This document shows positions 27,775-47,750 of a DNA stretch of 64,000 bases, one piece after another. The notes beneath the pieces are model-generated. The model saw only the letters and a program-made list of their open reading frames with translations, ran no database searches and had not been told where the DNA came from. The stretch's first letter is position 1. Every line of letters begins with the position of its first letter. The translations under genes were made by a program, and so were the position numbers. Location: positions 124,001 through 188,000 of the IMG/VR virus record IMGVR_UViG_3300042907_001080; one strand, 5' to 3'.

Positions 27775-28610
27775 AACTTACTATCAAAGAAAATACATTT
27801 AATGTAAAAAGAATCGTAGCATTCGGTTGCAGTTTTACAGCCGGGACCGAAATACTAGATTATCAATTAAATCCCTATTTTGTAGATTTAAAAAATAAAT
27901 TAGATGCGTATCAGTGGTGGGAAAAACTTAAAAAAGATCCAGATCAGATGAAGCTACAGCTAGAAATTCGAAAACAAGAACCCAACCATTCTTGGCCGGC
28001 ACATCTAGCTTCTTACTTGGGTGTGAACTTTATAAATTATGCAAAGCCTGGTAATAGTAATGAACTCATGTGTTGGCAGATAGAACAAAAATTAAATTCG
28101 GGAGAAATTACCGATGACGATTTAATTTTGGTCGGAACAACCGGAACCCAGCGATCTATGTTTTTCTCTAGTACCTATCCAGAACCTGTGCCGTTTTTAC
28201 TTTCAAATATCGAATCGTACAAAGTCGAACTATCAGAACATATAACAAAATATTTCACAGACGATAGACTCTTGTGGAATTATTATAGAGATTTAAAAGT
28301 ATTCGAATCAATAAAACAGAAAATAAATGGCAGATTGTTTGTGATCCCTATGGAACAAATTCGTGAAGAATTATGTCTTTGGCCCAGCACACACGCTTAC
28401 GGCACATATCGGGTAGCGTCACTTGAGAATGCTTTATTTTTTAACAAAATAATAAATCAATTACATAATTCTCAACTATTTGCAACTACAGATTGTTGTT
28501 TATACGATTTTAAAACGGAAAAAACTACATTACCACATGGACATTTAAATGAGGATGCTCATAAATCTTTCGCCGAACAGCTTTACAAAGAGCATGTTAT
28601 TATCAACTAA
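27768..28610 (+). CDS. SGNH-like hydrolase-fold protein
   Basis: 'VAFGCSFTAG', 'NYAKPGNSN', C-terminal 'PHGHLNEDAH'. Confidence 0.55.
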   Translation: MVKLTIKENTFNVKRIVAFGCSFTAGTEILDYQLNPYFVDLKNKLDAYQWWEKLKKDPDQMKLQLEIRKQEPNHSWPAHLASYLGVNFINYAKPGNSNELMCWQIEQKLNSGEITDDDLILVGTTGTQRSMFFSSTYPEPVPFLLSNIESYKVELSEHITKYFTDDRLLWNYYRDLKVFESIKQKINGRLFVIPMEQIREELCLWPSTHAYGTYRVASLENALFFNKIINQLHNSQLFATTDCCLYDFKTEKTTLPHGHLNEDAHKSFAEQLYKEHVIIN

Positions 28611-28611
28611 C

Positions 28612-28632
28612 CAGAATAGAGAAATTGTTCTG
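28612..28632. terminator. Possible hairpin at the convergent strand switch
   Basis: cagaata-N7-tgttctg between two convergent stop codons; weak stem, no U-tract. Confidence 0.25.
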
Positions 28633-29298
28633 CTATAATTTAATTAATGGATTTGTTATTATTGCACATAGATCAAGTTTCCAGAGTCCGTTGTGTTCGA
28701 TATTAAAATAGACTAATTCTAAATGATGTTCTTTGGCAAATCTGTTGGCACACTTGTTAATATGTTCATACATACAATCGTCGACAAATATAATACCGGG
28801 CTTCATGTTCGCATAACAATATTCTAAGTCAGTTTTTAAAACTTCGTCCTTATGGCTACCATCGAGTATTATACAACTCATTTGAGAAATATCAACATTA
28901 TGCACTACATCTGTAATTAACGTAATATTATCGCACTCTTTTTTATACAATTTTTGAATATGTCTAAAAGATGCGGGCTCTAACATAAGTTCGGGATACT
29001 TCGATCGTAGGTGCATTAAATGATCTGAGAGACCTTTCATTGCGAAGTATTCTTCAAAGTTGCTAGGGTCAACGGTTGTTATTGAATTGCTTGGGAATTC
29101 TTTTGCTAGTATATATGTAGTGCCGCCTGCAAATGTTCCAATTTCTAATATTTGTGTTAACTTATAATCATTGATTGCTTTGATAATAGGTGTTAACTTA
29201 TTCATGGGCATCAACGACATTGGTCGAGATGTTAAAATCTCTATTACTTCTTTTTCTACAGATGAATCATCGACTCTATACATAAGTAAATCTAACAA
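28633..29298 (-). CDS. Class I SAM-dependent methyltransferase (Methyltransf_24-like)
   Basis: 'ILEIGTFAGG' motif I, 'ILDGSH', 'KPGIIFVDD'. Confidence 0.8.
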   Translation of the reverse strand: MLDLLMYRVDDSSVEKEVIEILTSRPMSLMPMNKLTPIIKAINDYKLTQILEIGTFAGGTTYILAKEFPSNSITTVDPSNFEEYFAMKGLSDHLMHLRSKYPELMLEPASFRHIQKLYKKECDNITLITDVVHNVDISQMSCIILDGSHKDEVLKTDLEYCYANMKPGIIFVDDCMYEHINKCANRFAKEHHLELVYFNIEHNGLWKLDLCAIITNPLIKL

Positions 29299-29311
29299 TG
29301 CTTTTAATCAT

Positions 29312-29617
29312 CTAGAACAATTTATTAGTTTCGCTGGCAATATCAGTTTTCAAGCGGGTCACATCAACTTTAAAATCGATCTTTTTGATTTCATCCTTGT
29401 ATTCTTGGAGTGTGTTAAGCAATACGTCAGCGATGCTTTCGGAAGTTTGTTTAGTCAATTCATTTTTTACATCGATTTCCCATACTCTGCCATCTATAAA
29501 ATCCAGTCGTACTGAATCCAGATAGGCTACCGGCATGGTATTCATGTAGAGATCTTCAAAAACCTCCGGCCATTCTTTTACAAGATGGCGCGGAGGTTTG
29601 AACAAGGGATTAGGCAT
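29312..29617 (-). CDS. Hypothetical protein
   Basis: 101 aa, coupled to the upstream gene. Confidence 0.6.
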   Translation of the reverse strand: MPNPLFKPPRHLVKEWPEVFEDLYMNTMPVAYLDSVRLDFIDGRVWEIDVKNELTKQTSESIADVLLNTLQEYKDEIKKIDFKVDVTRLKTDIASETNKLF

Positions 29618-30260
29618 CAGCAGTTTCTTCTACCTTTTTAACTTTTTTAACAGTGGGATCGAGTTCTTCCGCTTCTTTGCGTAATCTTGCTGCTTCTTTA
29701 TACATAGCATCAGCTTGGCTACGATATGATTTTGCTAGATCCTTGTCAGTTAGTACAGCATCGGTTGCGGCCTGCGCTCGTATAGGAGCAGGTATATCTG
29801 AATCTACCGCAGGAATCGTATCATTTACTGTGGCTGCATTTTTAACTTCAGCTTTAGCAGACGGAGCACCTGCTACAAATGTGCATAGATCATCTACGGT
29901 GCAGTTTTTCTGTTCTGCTATCAGCGTGTTAAGATTAGCCAACAGCACAGTATCGTTGGTAGTAGGTGTCATCATTACAGCATCTGTGGCTACTTTAATC
30001 AATCTGCCATCTGCTTGCATGGCCCGCAACATAGGTCTACCATCCGGGAATGGGCGTATGTGCATGATTTCGCCAAACTCAAATGCATCCTGCGCTTGTT
30101 CTGTTTCTACCAAAGTCATAATCGAATCATGATATTGATCTGGCAGTTGAGCTACAGGTAATACTAGAGCCATGTTTGACTCTCCGGGCAACGTTCTAAA
30201 CACTACCAATACCTTGGCACCTGTGTTTTGAATTCTACCTATGTGTTTAAGGCTTTTCAT
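29610..30260 (-). CDS. Hypothetical phage protein
   Basis: 216 aa with a coiled-coil C-terminus. Confidence 0.65.
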   Translation of the reverse strand: MKSLKHIGRIQNTGAKVLVVFRTLPGESNMALVLPVAQLPDQYHDSIMTLVETEQAQDAFEFGEIMHIRPFPDGRPMLRAMQADGRLIKVATDAVMMTPTTNDTVLLANLNTLIAEQKNCTVDDLCTFVAGAPSAKAEVKNAATVNDTIPAVDSDIPAPIRAQAATDAVLTDKDLAKSYRSQADAMYKEAARLRKEAEELDPTVKKVKKVEETADA

Positions 30261-30500
30261 TTAGGCTTCCTTTTTAGATACAGCTTCAAGGAAGGAATTT
30301 AGTTTGTTGAAACTTTTACCAACTGCTTCCAATTCTGCTGCTTTGAACGCTCCTCTGCTTGTTGCAACTTCGATGATATTTTTTACGGCTAACAGATCGC
30401 TGATATTTAAATCAGGACCTTGTGCTGCAGGTGCTTCTGTTGCCGCAGGCGCTGCTTGGGCTGGTGTCTCTACGACTTGATCTTTAACTTCTTCTGACAT
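30261..30500 (-). CDS. Hypothetical protein
   Basis: 79 aa; SD AAGGAG and TAATG overlap support the start at 30500. Confidence 0.65.
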   Translation of the reverse strand: MSEEVKDQVVETPAQAAPAATEAPAAQGPDLNISDLLAVKNIIEVATSRGAFKAAELEAVGKSFNKLNSFLEAVSKKEA

Positions 30501-30769
30501 TAGTTTCTCCTTAGATGTGGGCATGCAAGCATGAAATAGGTTAATTCTTTTTGATCTTCAAAACCTACGAAATGCGAAGATCTTAAATTTCCACTCTGGT
30601 CTAGAGCAGGTTTTTTGCAGATATAATATCTGCCCTTGAGTTTGACTTTGATCCAATCTTCGATGCCTTCAAATATTTCAGATTCTGAAATATTCAATTC
30701 AGTGAAATGTGGGGCCACAGTCTTCAGCTTTCGCTGTTGTAGTACGTCCATTGGATTAAGGTCAAACAT
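30500..30769 (-). CDS. Hypothetical protein
   Basis: 89 aa, 8 nt downstream of TATAAATA. Confidence 0.6.
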   Translation of the reverse strand: MFDLNPMDVLQQRKLKTVAPHFTELNISESEIFEGIEDWIKVKLKGRYYICKKPALDQSGNLRSSHFVGFEDQKELTYFMLACPHLRRN

Positions 30770-30777
30770 AGTGAAAA

Positions 30778-30785
30778 TATTTATA
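30778..30785 (-). promoter_or_regulatory. Late promoter TATAAATA
   Basis: Exact consensus, intergenic. Confidence 0.65.
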
Positions 30786-30793
30786 CAGGGGGA

Positions 30794-31192
30794 TTACTCG
30801 GGGGTAGATTCTTGGCTAAGTCTTTTACTCATGGCTCGATTGTGTCCTAGCTTTCTAACATCTCCACTAAGAAGATATAACTCAAATGCAGCTTTTTCTT
30901 TCATTACTATAATGTGTTTTTTATTAACAAAGAAAGGAGAATCAATGTAGTTATCTAACCAAAGCAGCACCTGCGGAGTGAATGCAAATTCTTTGGGAAA
31001 TTCTATTTTGTAGGTTTTAATTTTGGCATATTTCTCAATGAATTCGAGAGCCTGTTCAGTTAATCTTAAACCACCTTGATCTTTTTTCCTAAAACTCCAC
31101 CACCATACAGCTTTGTAGTCTTTGATGTTTTTTTCATTAACCGGTAATTCTGCTGCCTGCAAGAACGCCTTGGTGTAGGCATCTTTGTTCAT
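30794..31192 (-). CDS. Hypothetical protein
   Basis: 132 aa from the ATG at 31192; tightly packed. Confidence 0.6.
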   Translation of the reverse strand: MNKDAYTKAFLQAAELPVNEKNIKDYKAVWWWSFRKKDQGGLRLTEQALEFIEKYAKIKTYKIEFPKEFAFTPQVLLWLDNYIDSPFFVNKKHIIVMKEKAAFELYLLSGDVRKLGHNRAMSKRLSQESTPE

Positions 31193-31193
31193 G

Positions 31194-31478
31194 TCATTTA
31201 ATCTCTTCACCTGCAGTGAGTTTATATACAGCAAAGTCTTTGGTCTTGAACAATCGATTTAATTTCTTTGCCAGATTATGTGCATGACCTGGATTTGAAA
31301 ATGAGACTTTTTTATATTTTGGTCCGGGATAGCTGGCTACCAAACTACCGCTCTTGAGATTGAAAGGTTGGCCGTTATAGAACACAGCCCAGATAGCTTC
31401 TGAATCGAGAATTTGCTCAACCTTGTAGGTTTCTTTGTTAGCATATTCTAAAAGAATTTTAGGTTTGGGTCTACTCAT
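31194..31478 (-). CDS. Hypothetical basic protein
   Basis: 94 aa; SD (TAGGA) and upstream TATAAATA. Confidence 0.65.
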   Translation of the reverse strand: MSRPKPKILLEYANKETYKVEQILDSEAIWAVFYNGQPFNLKSGSLVASYPGPKYKKVSFSNPGHAHNLAKKLNRLFKTKDFAVYKLTAGEEIK

Positions 31479-31505
31479 ATACGTGTTCCTAATTAACCAC
31501 GTATA

Positions 31506-31513
31506 TATTTATA
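31506..31513 (-). promoter_or_regulatory. Late promoter TATAAATA
   Basis: Exact consensus, intergenic. Confidence 0.65.
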
Positions 31514-31518
31514 TCTTT

Positions 31519-31767
31519 TTAGAACTTGCCGCCGTCGAATTTTACGTCTATTTGAGTGGTTGATTCTTTGATTGCTGCCAGCATTTGATGTATTTCGCCC
31601 ACAGTCTTGCTTAGTTTAGCAGACATGAGTGCCAGTTCTGTGGTCAGATCACGTGCTTCTTGTAAACTAATGCGTATTTCTTTTTGTTGACTGCGTTCAG
31701 CTACTTGAATTCTCTGCAACAGTTTCTGTATAGTGGGCAGTGTATCTGGTAGATTATTTTGCAACAT
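31519..31767 (-). CDS. Hypothetical coiled-coil protein
   Basis: 82 aa. Confidence 0.55.
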   Translation of the reverse strand: MLQNNLPDTLPTIQKLLQRIQVAERSQQKEIRISLQEARDLTTELALMSAKLSKTVGEIHQMLAAIKESTTQIDVKFDGGKF

Positions 31768-32230
31768 TAGCCAATACCTGTTTCATTTCTAATTCTGTTT
31801 TGAACGGACCTTTATATGGATATCGTTCCAGTGTGATTTTTTTTGGACAAAAACTTTTAACCCATCCTTTGTCAAATTTTATACAGTAGTAACCTGCACA
31901 GTATAGACTCTTGGAATCGCTGCTCTTGGTGAATAGCGGCAGTTTCTTACGAATATCAAACATGGCATTGTGAGGTTCGGCACTGGTGGAGTATCCATGA
32001 ACCTCATTAGGTAGAGCTGTGTCGGCTTCCTTGACAATTTTTACTGTGAAAAACTTTTTACCAAACTGACGAGTTAGACTGTCTTTGGTTTCGTAAATTT
32101 TCACACCCGACTCGTTGCTCATAAAAAATCTATTGTCGTCGTCTTTTCTCAGAGTGGCAATCTTCTCACCGTTCTCCTCTACGATCCAAAATTTATTTGC
32201 TATGATAGGTTTAGCATGTATATCTGTCAT
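31754..32230 (-). CDS. Hypothetical protein
   Basis: 158 aa, ATGA-coupled to the RNase H gene. Confidence 0.65.
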   Translation of the reverse strand: MTDIHAKPIIANKFWIVEENGEKIATLRKDDDNRFFMSNESGVKIYETKDSLTRQFGKKFFTVKIVKEADTALPNEVHGYSTSAEPHNAMFDIRKKLPLFTKSSDSKSLYCAGYYCIKFDKGWVKSFCPKKITLERYPYKGPFKTELEMKQVLANVAK

Positions 32231-44393: not shown

Positions 44394-47063
44394 TCACTCA
44401 AAATCAAACAGTTTGTTAAATGTATTATCCGACCTTGTTGAACTGATGTCCCATTCCAAAACACCAATAAGGTTTCCTAACTTCTCATCTATCACAGTGG
44501 TTTCCATTTCTGCATCGTTGAAAGGAAGATCCTTGAACCACTGCGGCAATCTCAGTTCATCCACAGGATAGGCCACGGAAGTATGCCCCATAGGATTGTC
44601 TTTGATCTTGCATACAATTACTTTCATGCCATCTACAATCTGCATGGAGTATTTGTCATCCATCATACGCCGGAGAGTGTTCCAATTCAATGAAGCTCTA
44701 ACATGCCCGGGCATGTTAGTCTTGCCTGCTTTTTTTTCTTTGGCAGCGTATTCTGTGATATTGTTGGCTCGCTTAGGCGAGCCCTTTTCCCAACCCGGTC
44801 GAGTTTTAAATTCTGTGCGAAAATCAGTGATATATTGCAGGATCTCTTCTTTGGTCACACCAGTTAGTGTCTTAGTCAGCACCTCACTCAAGAAGTCTTG
44901 TATAACAACCGGGGTATCTGAACGCTTGAGATCAAGCCCCATCGCTTTAATTTTTCCTGGTTTGCCTTCTGTGTCTGCTCGTTTGCCTTCTTTGTCGTAG
45001 TAGAGAACTGCGTATCGCTTTTTGGTGATGAACAGTCCTTTGCTTGCAACAATTTCGCGACCTGCTTTGATGACCTCGGCTCTGGTTCGAGGGACATGAA
45101 ATGCGTCCTGCATGAATTTGACAAATGTGCCATTGACCGTATCTCCTATGGTATCGTAAAGTTCGACCACTGATTCTCTGTTCCAGGGAATCAGTCCCTT
45201 CTCAATGTCTTTTTTCAAGGTAGTATACGCTGAAAAATAACAAGAGTCTGTGTCACCGTAGATTACTGCTCGACCGATGTGATCATACTCTCCAGTGATA
45301 ATTTCGTTTACTTTTGATGCCATGTGTTTGGCAATTTGTCTTCCGGTGAGAGTTGTGGACTGTCCAATTCTGTTATCAAAGAATCTACAGCCTGGATTTA
45401 AAATTGCACCATACAGACTGTTTAGTAGAATCTTCTTGACCAACTGTCGCTTGTCCCAGTATTCTTCTTCAATCTTGTTGCCGGCCTGGATACATTCTCG
45501 CAGTTTGGCCTGCATTTCTTTACGTTCTTTATACCAACGTGCTAGCAGTCCGGATATAACACCCTCAGTTTCATATGTGAATATAGTGCCGTTGGCTGAG
45601 ATCATCCAAGGTTGATTGCTGTCAAATATAAGATCATAGGCCTGAGCCGCACTTAGCGTATCCGAGCCGCCACCTTCCCAATCGACAGTGACTTCACGAC
45701 CCACTTCTCGATTCATCACAGCGGAATATTCAAGACTACCAAATATGCCTTCCCAAGCGGACGCAAATGATTTTCCTTTTGACATTTCTGCTGCAATAAA
45801 ATCCTTGGTCCCATCCTGTCTCAACTGACCTACGATGGTTTCAGGACCCATATTCAAAGCCCGAATAGCACTAGGATACAGTGAGTTAATATCTAGCGAG
45901 CCGATCCACTCATGTATACCTTTCTTGGGATATGCAACGTAGGCACCAGCAGCTTGAGTGTCTCCGTGCTCTTCCATTTTTTTGCGATTAGGAACTATCA
46001 TACCTCTGCGATGAGCTTCGTTGATGATAGCTTGTTCAGTCACAGCCACTGCACCCATAGTAGTTGCTAACAGCACTGTGTTTTCGTGTGCAATTGTATT
46101 GGCTAAGTCAATAAATTTCAGTTTCTTATCTAGATCATCTAACAGTTTACAATCGTTGATATTGTATTCAACGAATGTTTTAAAATCGTTGTTGTATAAT
46201 TGATCCAATGTGCCTTCATACTGAGTCTTTCTCTGACCTAGTTCATATTCGGCAATAGCATCTAATCGATAGGTGTGACGTTCTTCATAGGTATACTTGC
46301 GATAAAGTTCAAGACTGTCTATATGCACACGGCCAATGAAGTCATATGTAGTGGCAGTTTTACCGAACTTTTCATATTCTCGTTTCTTAGGCAAACAATT
46401 CCATAGACAAAAACGTTTGGTATCTTCTTTACTGAGAACCTTGGTAACACGATTAACAGTATATGGAATATCAAAGCCTTCCGAGTTCCAACCACTCAGC
46501 ACATCAGCATCTTGTATGAGATCCAAGAATGTGTTTAGCATGTCTGCTTCGTTGTCAAACAGCATGGTATTGGGAAATTCTTCAACCTGCTTGGTGGCTT
46601 CTGCCATGCTGAGTGTTTTGGGAGGTATGGCTAGACACACCATGGTCTCCATCCATTGTAGGTAGACAGCAATCGCAGTAATTGGCATGAACGCATCATC
46701 TGGTGATGCATAGCCACGTTCTGGATCAAAGTCTACCTCAATATCGAAAAACGCTACATTTAGCTTAGGTGCATCTTGATTGAGATAATTGTCTTCTAAA
46801 CAACGATATATGGGATTAATATCGCTTTCGTGAAGTTTTTTGTTTGAATGTATGGCAAGTTCTTTGCGATGTTCTTTGACATTCTTTGAACTTACACGGC
46901 TAAGAGGTTCACGCTTAATGGATTGGAACTTGCCTTTGGGGTCGTTGTAATAGAATATATGTCTGGCAGGATAGTCTTTGAAATGCCTCTGCCCTTTGTC
47001 GTCACGCTCAACAACACGTATCATGTCATCGTCGCGATCGTAGTATGCGTCCACGAAACTCAT
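44394..47063 (-). CDS. Family B DNA polymerase (gp43-like)
   Basis: ExoI 'FFDIEV', ExoII 'GWNSEGFDIPY', ExoIII 'YNINDC'; polymerase motifs 'LDINSLYPS', 'KILLNSLYG', 'YGDTDS', 'KKRYA'. Confidence 0.97.
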   Translation of the reverse strand: MSFVDAYYDRDDDMIRVVERDDKGQRHFKDYPARHIFYYNDPKGKFQSIKREPLSRVSSKNVKEHRKELAIHSNKKLHESDINPIYRCLEDNYLNQDAPKLNVAFFDIEVDFDPERGYASPDDAFMPITAIAVYLQWMETMVCLAIPPKTLSMAEATKQVEEFPNTMLFDNEADMLNTFLDLIQDADVLSGWNSEGFDIPYTVNRVTKVLSKEDTKRFCLWNCLPKKREYEKFGKTATTYDFIGRVHIDSLELYRKYTYEERHTYRLDAIAEYELGQRKTQYEGTLDQLYNNDFKTFVEYNINDCKLLDDLDKKLKFIDLANTIAHENTVLLATTMGAVAVTEQAIINEAHRRGMIVPNRKKMEEHGDTQAAGAYVAYPKKGIHEWIGSLDINSLYPSAIRALNMGPETIVGQLRQDGTKDFIAAEMSKGKSFASAWEGIFGSLEYSAVMNREVGREVTVDWEGGGSDTLSAAQAYDLIFDSNQPWMISANGTIFTYETEGVISGLLARWYKERKEMQAKLRECIQAGNKIEEEYWDKRQLVKKILLNSLYGAILNPGCRFFDNRIGQSTTLTGRQIAKHMASKVNEIITGEYDHIGRAVIYGDTDSCYFSAYTTLKKDIEKGLIPWNRESVVELYDTIGDTVNGTFVKFMQDAFHVPRTRAEVIKAGREIVASKGLFITKKRYAVLYYDKEGKRADTEGKPGKIKAMGLDLKRSDTPVVIQDFLSEVLTKTLTGVTKEEILQYITDFRTEFKTRPGWEKGSPKRANNITEYAAKEKKAGKTNMPGHVRASLNWNTLRRMMDDKYSMQIVDGMKVIVCKIKDNPMGHTSVAYPVDELRLPQWFKDLPFNDAEMETTVIDEKLGNLIGVLEWDISSTRSDNTFNKLFDFE

Positions 47064-47074
47064 TTTTTCTCCTA

Positions 47075-47119
47075 TGCAATTTTAGGCTTGCAAATACCAA
47101 TGTGCGGTTTATGGCCCGC
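47075..47119 (-). promoter_or_regulatory. Twin hairpin in the polymerase 5' leader (putative translational operator)
   Basis: On the - strand: GCGG-GCCATAAA-CCGC, then TGCAA-GCCTAAAA-TTGCA abutting the SD TAGGAG. Confidence 0.55.
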
Positions 47120-47136
47120 CTACCTTCTTACTTTAT

Positions 47137-47427
47137 TTAATTAATTAGCATTCTTGCTAGGCCGAATGTGTCAATTGCGGTTAGCAAGATGTAGTTAGCC
47201 AACATGCCAAACGATTTCCGAGTATAAGCAGCCCAAGCATACATGGCACAGCCAGCGATCCAAATAGGATACAACACAAGTAAAGGCGGATTGGGAACTG
47301 TAAGCGCCATAGTGATTGAGCAGCCGATACTAACAGCCCAGGCAAGCAGCTCAACAACAAAACGGAAGCGATTGCTGTGCCAGTCATCTCTGATCCAATC
47401 AAAAGTTGGTTTTAATAATTCATTCAT
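47137..47427 (-). CDS. Small integral membrane protein (about 3 TM)
   Basis: 96 aa with three hydrophobic segments. Confidence 0.65.
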   Translation of the reverse strand: MNELLKPTFDWIRDDWHSNRFRFVVELLAWAVSIGCSITMALTVPNPPLLVLYPIWIAGCAMYAWAAYTRKSFGMLANYILLTAIDTFGLARMLIN

Positions 47428-47684
47428 TCAGGAAGTTTTTTAGTAACACCGAGAATCATTTCAATCTCGCTCCACTCTGCCTCATGGTCTTTCCAATTGT
47501 CTTTGTGTGCGATACGTATGGCTTTGTTGATCCAACTGGGTTTGATTTGTAATTCTTCTGCGACAGCTTTAACAGTTTCTTTAAGACCTTCATTGAGATC
47601 TTCTACTTCACGAAGCACATTAGATCCTTCGTTGATTAATCTTTCGAGTTTGGCTTTTTCTTCCGGTCCATACATTTTTGACAT
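47424..47684 (-). CDS. T4 DsbA/GapR-like dsDNA-binding protein
   Basis: 86 aa helical pattern 'L..LI.E....L.E...L...LKE.....AEE......I.K..R..H'; strong promoter and SD. Confidence 0.55.
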   Translation of the reverse strand: MSKMYGPEEKAKLERLINEGSNVLREVEDLNEGLKETVKAVAEELQIKPSWINKAIRIAHKDNWKDHEAEWSEIEMILGVTKKLPE

Positions 47685-47704: not shown

Positions 47705-47733
47705 ATTATATAGTCATAAAAAAAGCCAGTCAA
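47705..47733 (-). promoter_or_regulatory. Sigma70-type promoter
   Basis: TTGACT-17 nt-TATAAT upstream of the dsbA-like/polymerase genes. Confidence 0.8.
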
Positions 47734-47750
47734 TGATAGACTGGCTTTTT
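47718..47750. terminator. Intrinsic terminator (bidirectional-type)
   Basis: aaaaagccagtc-aatgata-gactggcttttt, with A/T tracts on both sides. Confidence 0.85.

Follow-up and report, generated by a model that had tools for sequence, protein, structure and literature searches.

The polB locus and its leader

The window analysed here is a 64,000-nt stretch (bases 124001-188000) of the 281,658-bp IMG/VR virus record IMGVR_UViG_3300042907_001080, a jumbo phage genome with 40% G+C that is found repeatedly in lake-water metagenomes. GC and AT skew change sign at window 28000-32000, suggesting a switch of the predominant coding strand. On the minus strand, the region around the DNA polymerase gene contains the following features, listed in the direction of transcription.

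47720-47750: 12-bp palindrome with flanking A and T runs, resembling a bidirectional terminator, which overlaps the -35 box of the promoter-like sequence below (together 47705-47750); several weak sub-threshold Rfam hits pile up on this hairpin.
47705-47733 (-): sigma-70-like promoter TTGACT-17-TATAAT (11 of 12), a candidate start of a dsbA-ORF96-polB transcript, from a consensus scan only.
47424-47684 (-): DsbA-like transcription regulator gene (Pfam PF11126, phrog_639), probably the first gene of the same transcription unit.
47137-47427 (-): 96-aa ORF (ORF96) with a hydrophobic, conserved C-terminus (...SFGMLANYILLTAIDTFGLARMLIN) and no Pfam or PHROG match; its stop codon (47139-47137) lies 12 nt before unit 1.
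47104-47124 (-): pseudoknot unit 1, with S1 5' strand GGU 47124-47122, L1 AG 47121-47120, S2 5' strand GCGG 47119-47116, loop 47115-47108 (GCC 47115-47113 is the S1 3' strand and AUAAA is L3) and S2 3' strand CCGC 47107-47104.
47099-47103 (-): linker ACAUU, varying in length (about 4-9 nt) and sequence among relatives in our alignments (A2 and A3).
47075-47098 (-): pseudoknot unit 2, the core unit, with S1 5' strand GGU 47098-47096, L1 AUU 47095-47093, S2 5' strand UGCAA 47092-47088, loop 47087-47080 (GCC 47087-47085 is the S1 3' strand and UAAAA is L3) and S2 3' strand UUGCA 47079-47075.
47069-47073 (-): Shine-Dalgarno (SD) AGGAG, 1 nt after unit 2.
44394-47063 (-): polB, an 889-aa family B DNA polymerase of the T4/RB69 gp43 type, with start codon at 47063-47061.

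The polymerase carries Pfam DNA_pol_B (PF00136) and the exonuclease domain (PF03104) and is colinear with the RB69 and T4 gp43 structures (E 1e-62); its nearest cultured relatives are the jumbo phages Phosso (50% aa identity), Atu_ph07 and the Rak2/121Q group. A small ORF occupies the same place as ORF96 in Phosso, 121Q and Vibrio phage 2.275.O. The leader reads GGU-AG-GCGG[GCCAUAAA]CCGC, ACAUU, GGU-AUU-UGCAA[GCCUAAAA]UUGCA, followed by U, AGGAG, five A and AUG. The region singled out by the original prediction (47075-47139) runs from the ORF96 stop codon to the 3' end of the second hairpin, and its observation, two 8-nt-loop hairpins with different stems and near-identical loops of which the second touches the SD, is confirmed. 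Stimulation of frameshifting or readthrough of the upstream ORF was considered and rejected, because a second in-frame stop follows and the distance varies. Assembled metatranscriptome contigs of relatives span ORF96, the leader and polB, but this is weak transcript evidence, since such contigs cannot show RNA ends, strand, a single transcript or even transcription.

Covariation supports two tandem pseudoknots

On the sequence of the window alone, the case for the element is weak. The 121-nt leader folds no better than shuffles (z -0.82), and the loop word GCCWWAAA is not enriched in the window (6 found against 12.5 expected). However, of 36 GCCWWAAA sites in the 281.7-kb genome, these two are the only ones flanked by G+C-containing Watson-Crick stems of 4 bp or more, whereas a third, with a 4-bp A/U-rich stem, lies elsewhere; the two lie 28 nt apart. 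A loose descriptor for single units gave 26 hits in the whole genome against 21.8 expected, so that extra low-information single units are neither shown nor excluded.

The decisive evidence is comparative, and covariation among polymerase leaders of related phages had been named beforehand as one check. A protein-based retrieval gave 80 IMG/VR loci with 85-100% identical polymerases, and all 79 that had upstream sequence carry both hairpins; on the 46 distinct leaders, 98% of cells pair, against 24-39% when partners are slid. A pattern scan anchored on unit 2 gave at least 138 distinct leaders, from polymerases 67-100% identical to that of the window, of which 137 have a unit-1 hairpin, with 53 different stems. 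On 99 diverse leaders aligned to a covariance model of the element (alignment A3), 96.4% of cells are paired, against 25-40% when partners are slid, and there are 234 cells with changes on both sides against 76 in shuffles (0 of 500 shuffles reach this). The two middle pairs of hairpin 2 take 8 complementary forms, with at least 36 state changes on a polymerase tree. It should be kept in mind that this alignment is fitted to the model, that the invariance of much of unit 2 in it is partly imposed by the search patterns used, that the trees are quick ones and that no energy model for pseudoknots entered the analysis. In total, about 170 distinct polB leaders from IMG/VR lake-type contigs carry the element.

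Our analyses further show that the units are pseudoknots and not plain hairpins. RNAalifold, unprompted, paired a GGU upstream of hairpin 1 with the loop GCC, and in each unit the loop GCC pairs with a GGU 1-3 nt upstream of its own stem. In the unit-1 sample, which was not constrained by the search pattern, the word pairs are GGU:GCC 108, GGC:GCC 22 and AGU:GCU 3 of 3, with one true exception (L181; L numbers designate individual leaders or contigs in our set). For unit 2, S1 is GGU:GCC in 84 sequences and AGU:GCU in 14, with no mixed form. In a direct search for unit-2 variants, every genuine polB leader with a non-G first base has AGU together with GCU (17 contigs), and no genuine leader combines GGU with GCA, GCG or GCU. 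A second protein-based retrieval around a divergent member, reaching a sister clade, added AGUC:GACU, GGUC:GACC, UGUC:GACA, UAGU:ACUA, GGU:ACC, AGC:GCU, GAGU:GCUC and AGG:CCU, and AGU:ACU is also among the covarying forms. A simple pseudoknot finder sees two or more such units in 120 of 213 leaders, against 9 of 1065 shuffles, which is an undercount because bulged stems are missed. Unit-1 S1 states change at least 19 times on the polB tree, whereas the unit-2 AGU:GCU form is a single clade. The invariant U.G pair and other G.U pairs place the fold on the sense RNA strand. The consensus unit has an S1 of 3-4 bp, an L1 of 0-4 nt, an S2 of 4-6 bp (often with one bulge in unit 1) and an L3 of 3-6 nt of form NNAAN, and thus has the helix pairing and loop lengths of an H-type pseudoknot.

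The interpretation offered by the original prediction, a duplicated autogenous operator like that of T4 gp43 or a switchable RNA motif, is partly supported. The motif is a genuine duplicated structured RNA in the polymerase leader, abuts the SD and resembles the T4 gp43 operator in position and outer form, as seen in the T4 leader itself (AGCCU[AAUAACUC]GGGCU) and in the review of Uzan & Miller 2010 (PMC3014915). On the other hand, the proposed switch, in which an upstream TAGGC pairs with loop 2, is not supported, because loop-2 positions 4-5 vary freely, TAGGC disappears in relatives with other hairpin-1 stems, and leaders whose two units carry different pairing words (L036, L109, L194, L343, L362, L338, L339) show that each loop pairs with the trimer just upstream of its own stem. 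The same leaders led us to reject any loop-loop or swapped pairing between the units.

Distribution and association with polB

The covariance model finds one site in the whole 281.7-kb genome (E 8e-25, nothing else at E up to 10) and exactly one per locus in 957 kb of relatives, and every genuine instance heads polB or a short ORF before it. In nine leaders an ORF lies between the element and polB, and in eight of them its stop overlaps the polB start as ATGA or TAATG, so that control at the first ribosome-binding site would pass to polB; in the remaining case (L167) polB has its own SD. These inserted ORFs (L269:3090-3137 (-) and L227; L102, L103, L119, L095, L243, L167) comprise a 15-aa leader peptide (MSNKNWFEKTQGKGQ), Cys-rich ORFs of about 45-60 aa, a 180-aa ORF and an ORF of about 200 aa, the last being the one that does not overlap. 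In L269 and L227, unit 1 has lost the upstream pairing word and its loop reads ACAUAAC or ACACCAC, the former resembling the T4 operator loop core AUAAC. Spacing is tight: in 138 leaders the SD core starts 0-6 nt (mode 2) after unit 2, and the start codon lies 10-18 nt (mode 12) after it. In several relatives (L165, L116, L150, L195, L362, L261, L271, L210, L368) a perfect TATAAT box lies 0-8 nt before the S1 5' strand of unit 1, and a proximal transcript would therefore start at or inside unit 1; in some cases it might lack the S1 strand, giving two mRNA forms with and without pseudoknot 1.

Unit 1 is dispensable, being replaced by a terminator in L117 and missing in L224, whereas unit 2 is kept in both. 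The whole element was lost or gained at least 3-4 times among polymerases with tree distances of about 0.3 changes per column or less. Forty of 66 distinct leaders in a sister clade (L293, L296-L317 and others) lack both the element and any SD, and carry TATAAT or TAAAAT 6-8 nt before the ATG, which looks like a leaderless polB mRNA.

Outside this group of uncultured phages, the element was not found. There is no match to any Rfam 15 family, including riboswitches and metagenome-derived motifs, at E up to 10 inside 47064-47136. A megablast of the region against GenBank phages gave no match, blastn of the element against cultured phages gave chance hits only, and the element is absent from the leaders of Phosso, Atu_ph07, Vibrio phage 2.275.O, 121Q and T4. 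A pattern scan for the main-clade form in 185,579 prokaryotic genomes gave 36 chance-level hits, of which one has a stem and none is near polB. Our literature searches found no paper describing it.

Possible functions and comparison with known operators

What the analysis establishes, with high confidence, is a conserved RNA of two tandem H-type pseudoknots, each about 21-24 nt, at the head of the polB cistron and abutting an unpaired SD; this secondary structure rests on covariation, whereas the three-dimensional fold, the function, and any binding or repression by a protein are inferred. In the proposed fold, the 3-bp helix between GGU and the first three loop bases stacks on the 4-6-bp stem, and the A-rich five-base loop is placed to lie in the minor groove of the short helix. 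Most likely the element controls how much polymerase is made. Our preferred but tentative reading is a translational operator that is ON by default because the SD is left single-stranded, and that would be shut when a protein bound to unit 2, helped by unit 1, covers the SD and blocks the 30S subunit. The most economical candidate binder is the polymerase itself when not engaged on DNA, which would amount to autogenous repression as for T4/RB69 gp43 but through an unrelated RNA; this autogenous reading is the leading one, although we consider it somewhat less likely than not. It is in agreement with the single site per genome, on the polymerase's own gene, with the colinearity of the protein with gp43, with the reported repression by T4, RB69 and RB49 gp43 of their own translation through a hairpin next to the ribosome-binding site in which the A residues at the 3' side of the loop matter (PMC3014915), and with the lack of a detectable RegA homologue in this genome. 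However, the argument is one of position and analogy, and nothing here singles out the polymerase over another RNA-binding protein; a 3-bp helix is marginal on its own and the local fold is not unusually stable, repeated loss shows that the element is dispensable, and some T4-type polymerases do not autoregulate (PMC3014915).

Among the alternatives, a cis-acting element with no specific partner, stabilizing the polB message against 5'-end-dependent nucleases or acting as a ribosome standby or enhancer platform, is unlikely but survives best. Apart from the folds and the loop adenines, little is conserved across the whole family, the TATAAT boxes suggest that the element may sit at the very 5' end of a transcript in several relatives, the SD is not sequestered and repeated loss is tolerated. 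Yet within the main clade the unit-2 linker AUU and three stem pairs are invariant even in the protein-based sample, which is more than a mere roadblock needs, and the strict adjacency to the SD and the unique association with polB would remain unexplained. Almost as plausible is an operator for a different phage or host RNA-binding protein that represses or activates polB translation; all the positional evidence fits any protein binder equally well, and two similar units would suit a dimer, but a general regulator such as RegA has many targets (PMC3014915), whereas there is a single site per genome here, and neither a RegA homologue nor another candidate gene was identified. A tandem riboswitch, in which each unit would bind a small molecule such as a nucleotide that stabilizes the 3-bp helix and changes access to the SD, is doubtful. 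Its size and topology recall the small pseudoknot aptamers (preQ1-I, SAM-II, guanidine-III), its layout recalls guanidine-II and tandem aptamers, and a marginal 3-bp helix is typical of ligand-stabilized folds; however, L1 varies in length and sequence and S1 and S2 covary freely, leaving only loop adenines as candidates for a binding pocket, no conserved anti-SD or terminator acts as an expression platform, the gap to the SD varies, and the Rfam and prokaryotic genome searches were negative. A similarly improbable possibility is that the element is an RNA mimic of a primer-template junction capturing two idle polymerase molecules cooperatively; either this or a phage-specific riboswitch would let the phage gate polymerase synthesis by the state of its nucleotide pool or replication forks, through an RNA class with no cellular counterpart. 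A DNA-level signal (promoter, origin or hairpin promoter) or a pair of chance hairpins, for which only the AT-rich surroundings and the non-significant single-sequence fold speak, is contradicted by the covariation of stems whose sequence drifts, by G.U pairs that would be A.C mismatches on the other strand, and by the about 170 distinct leaders that keep the fold.

Autogenous translational control of a DNA polymerase has been described only in T4-type phages and, according to the 2010 review, a pseudoknot used for translational autoregulation in a virus was then known only for gene 32 (PMC3014915). The element described here is an unrelated, compact and well-supported RNA fold at the same regulatory position in a large group of uncultured freshwater jumbo phages, where it is abundant, rich in natural compensatory variants and repeatedly lost among close relatives. 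It offers a directly testable case of post-transcriptional control of phage replication that would be convergent, or much wider than assumed, and it would be a new RNA family for the databases as well as a small two-pseudoknot module whose natural variants could serve structural work.

With guanidine-II (mini-ykkC) and other small or tandem pseudoknot riboswitches (preQ1-I, guanidine-III), the element shares twin small stem-loops with different stems and near-identical loops just upstream of an SD, and small H-type pseudoknots of 20-40 nt, but here the loops do not pair with each other, each pairing locally, and no conserved pocket or expression platform is present. With the gene 43 operator of T4, RB69 and RB49, it shares a position in the leader of a gp43-type polymerase gene just 5' of the SD, a 5-bp stem and 8-nt loop (unit 2), conserved adenines at the 3' side of the loop and, in several relatives, a promoter-like box just upstream, as in T4. 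However, the T4-type operator is a single hairpin of 16-18 bases with a -UAAC- or -UAAA- loop core and is not known to be a pseudoknot, whereas here there are two units with a GCC-NN-AA-N loop whose first three bases pair with an upstream trimer and whose positions 4-5 vary in unit 2, and the element sits closer to the start codon (12 nt against 18 nt). We found no sequence or model homology between the two, the covariance model giving no hit at the T4 gene 43 leader and a best hit elsewhere in 9 kb of T4 at 12.8 bits. The T4 leader (L205 5894-5960 (-)) and unit 2 (window 47080-47089) share the word AGCCUAA, a helix strand followed by an A-rich single strand, but in T4 the GCC pairs downstream and here upstream, and because the UA varies among relatives this may be coincidence. 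The gene 32 mRNA pseudoknot of T4, T2 and RB69, used for autogenous control by the single-strand-binding protein, is likewise an H-type pseudoknot in the leader of a replication gene, but it is single and lies far upstream, at the 5' end of the leader, followed by an unstructured A+U-rich tract that reaches the ribosome-binding site and that the protein coats cooperatively, whereas here two small pseudoknots touch the SD of a polymerase gene and there is no such tract. The element, which fits the defining criteria of neither operator nor of any Rfam family, resembles the gene 43 operator in position and the gene 32 operator in fold.
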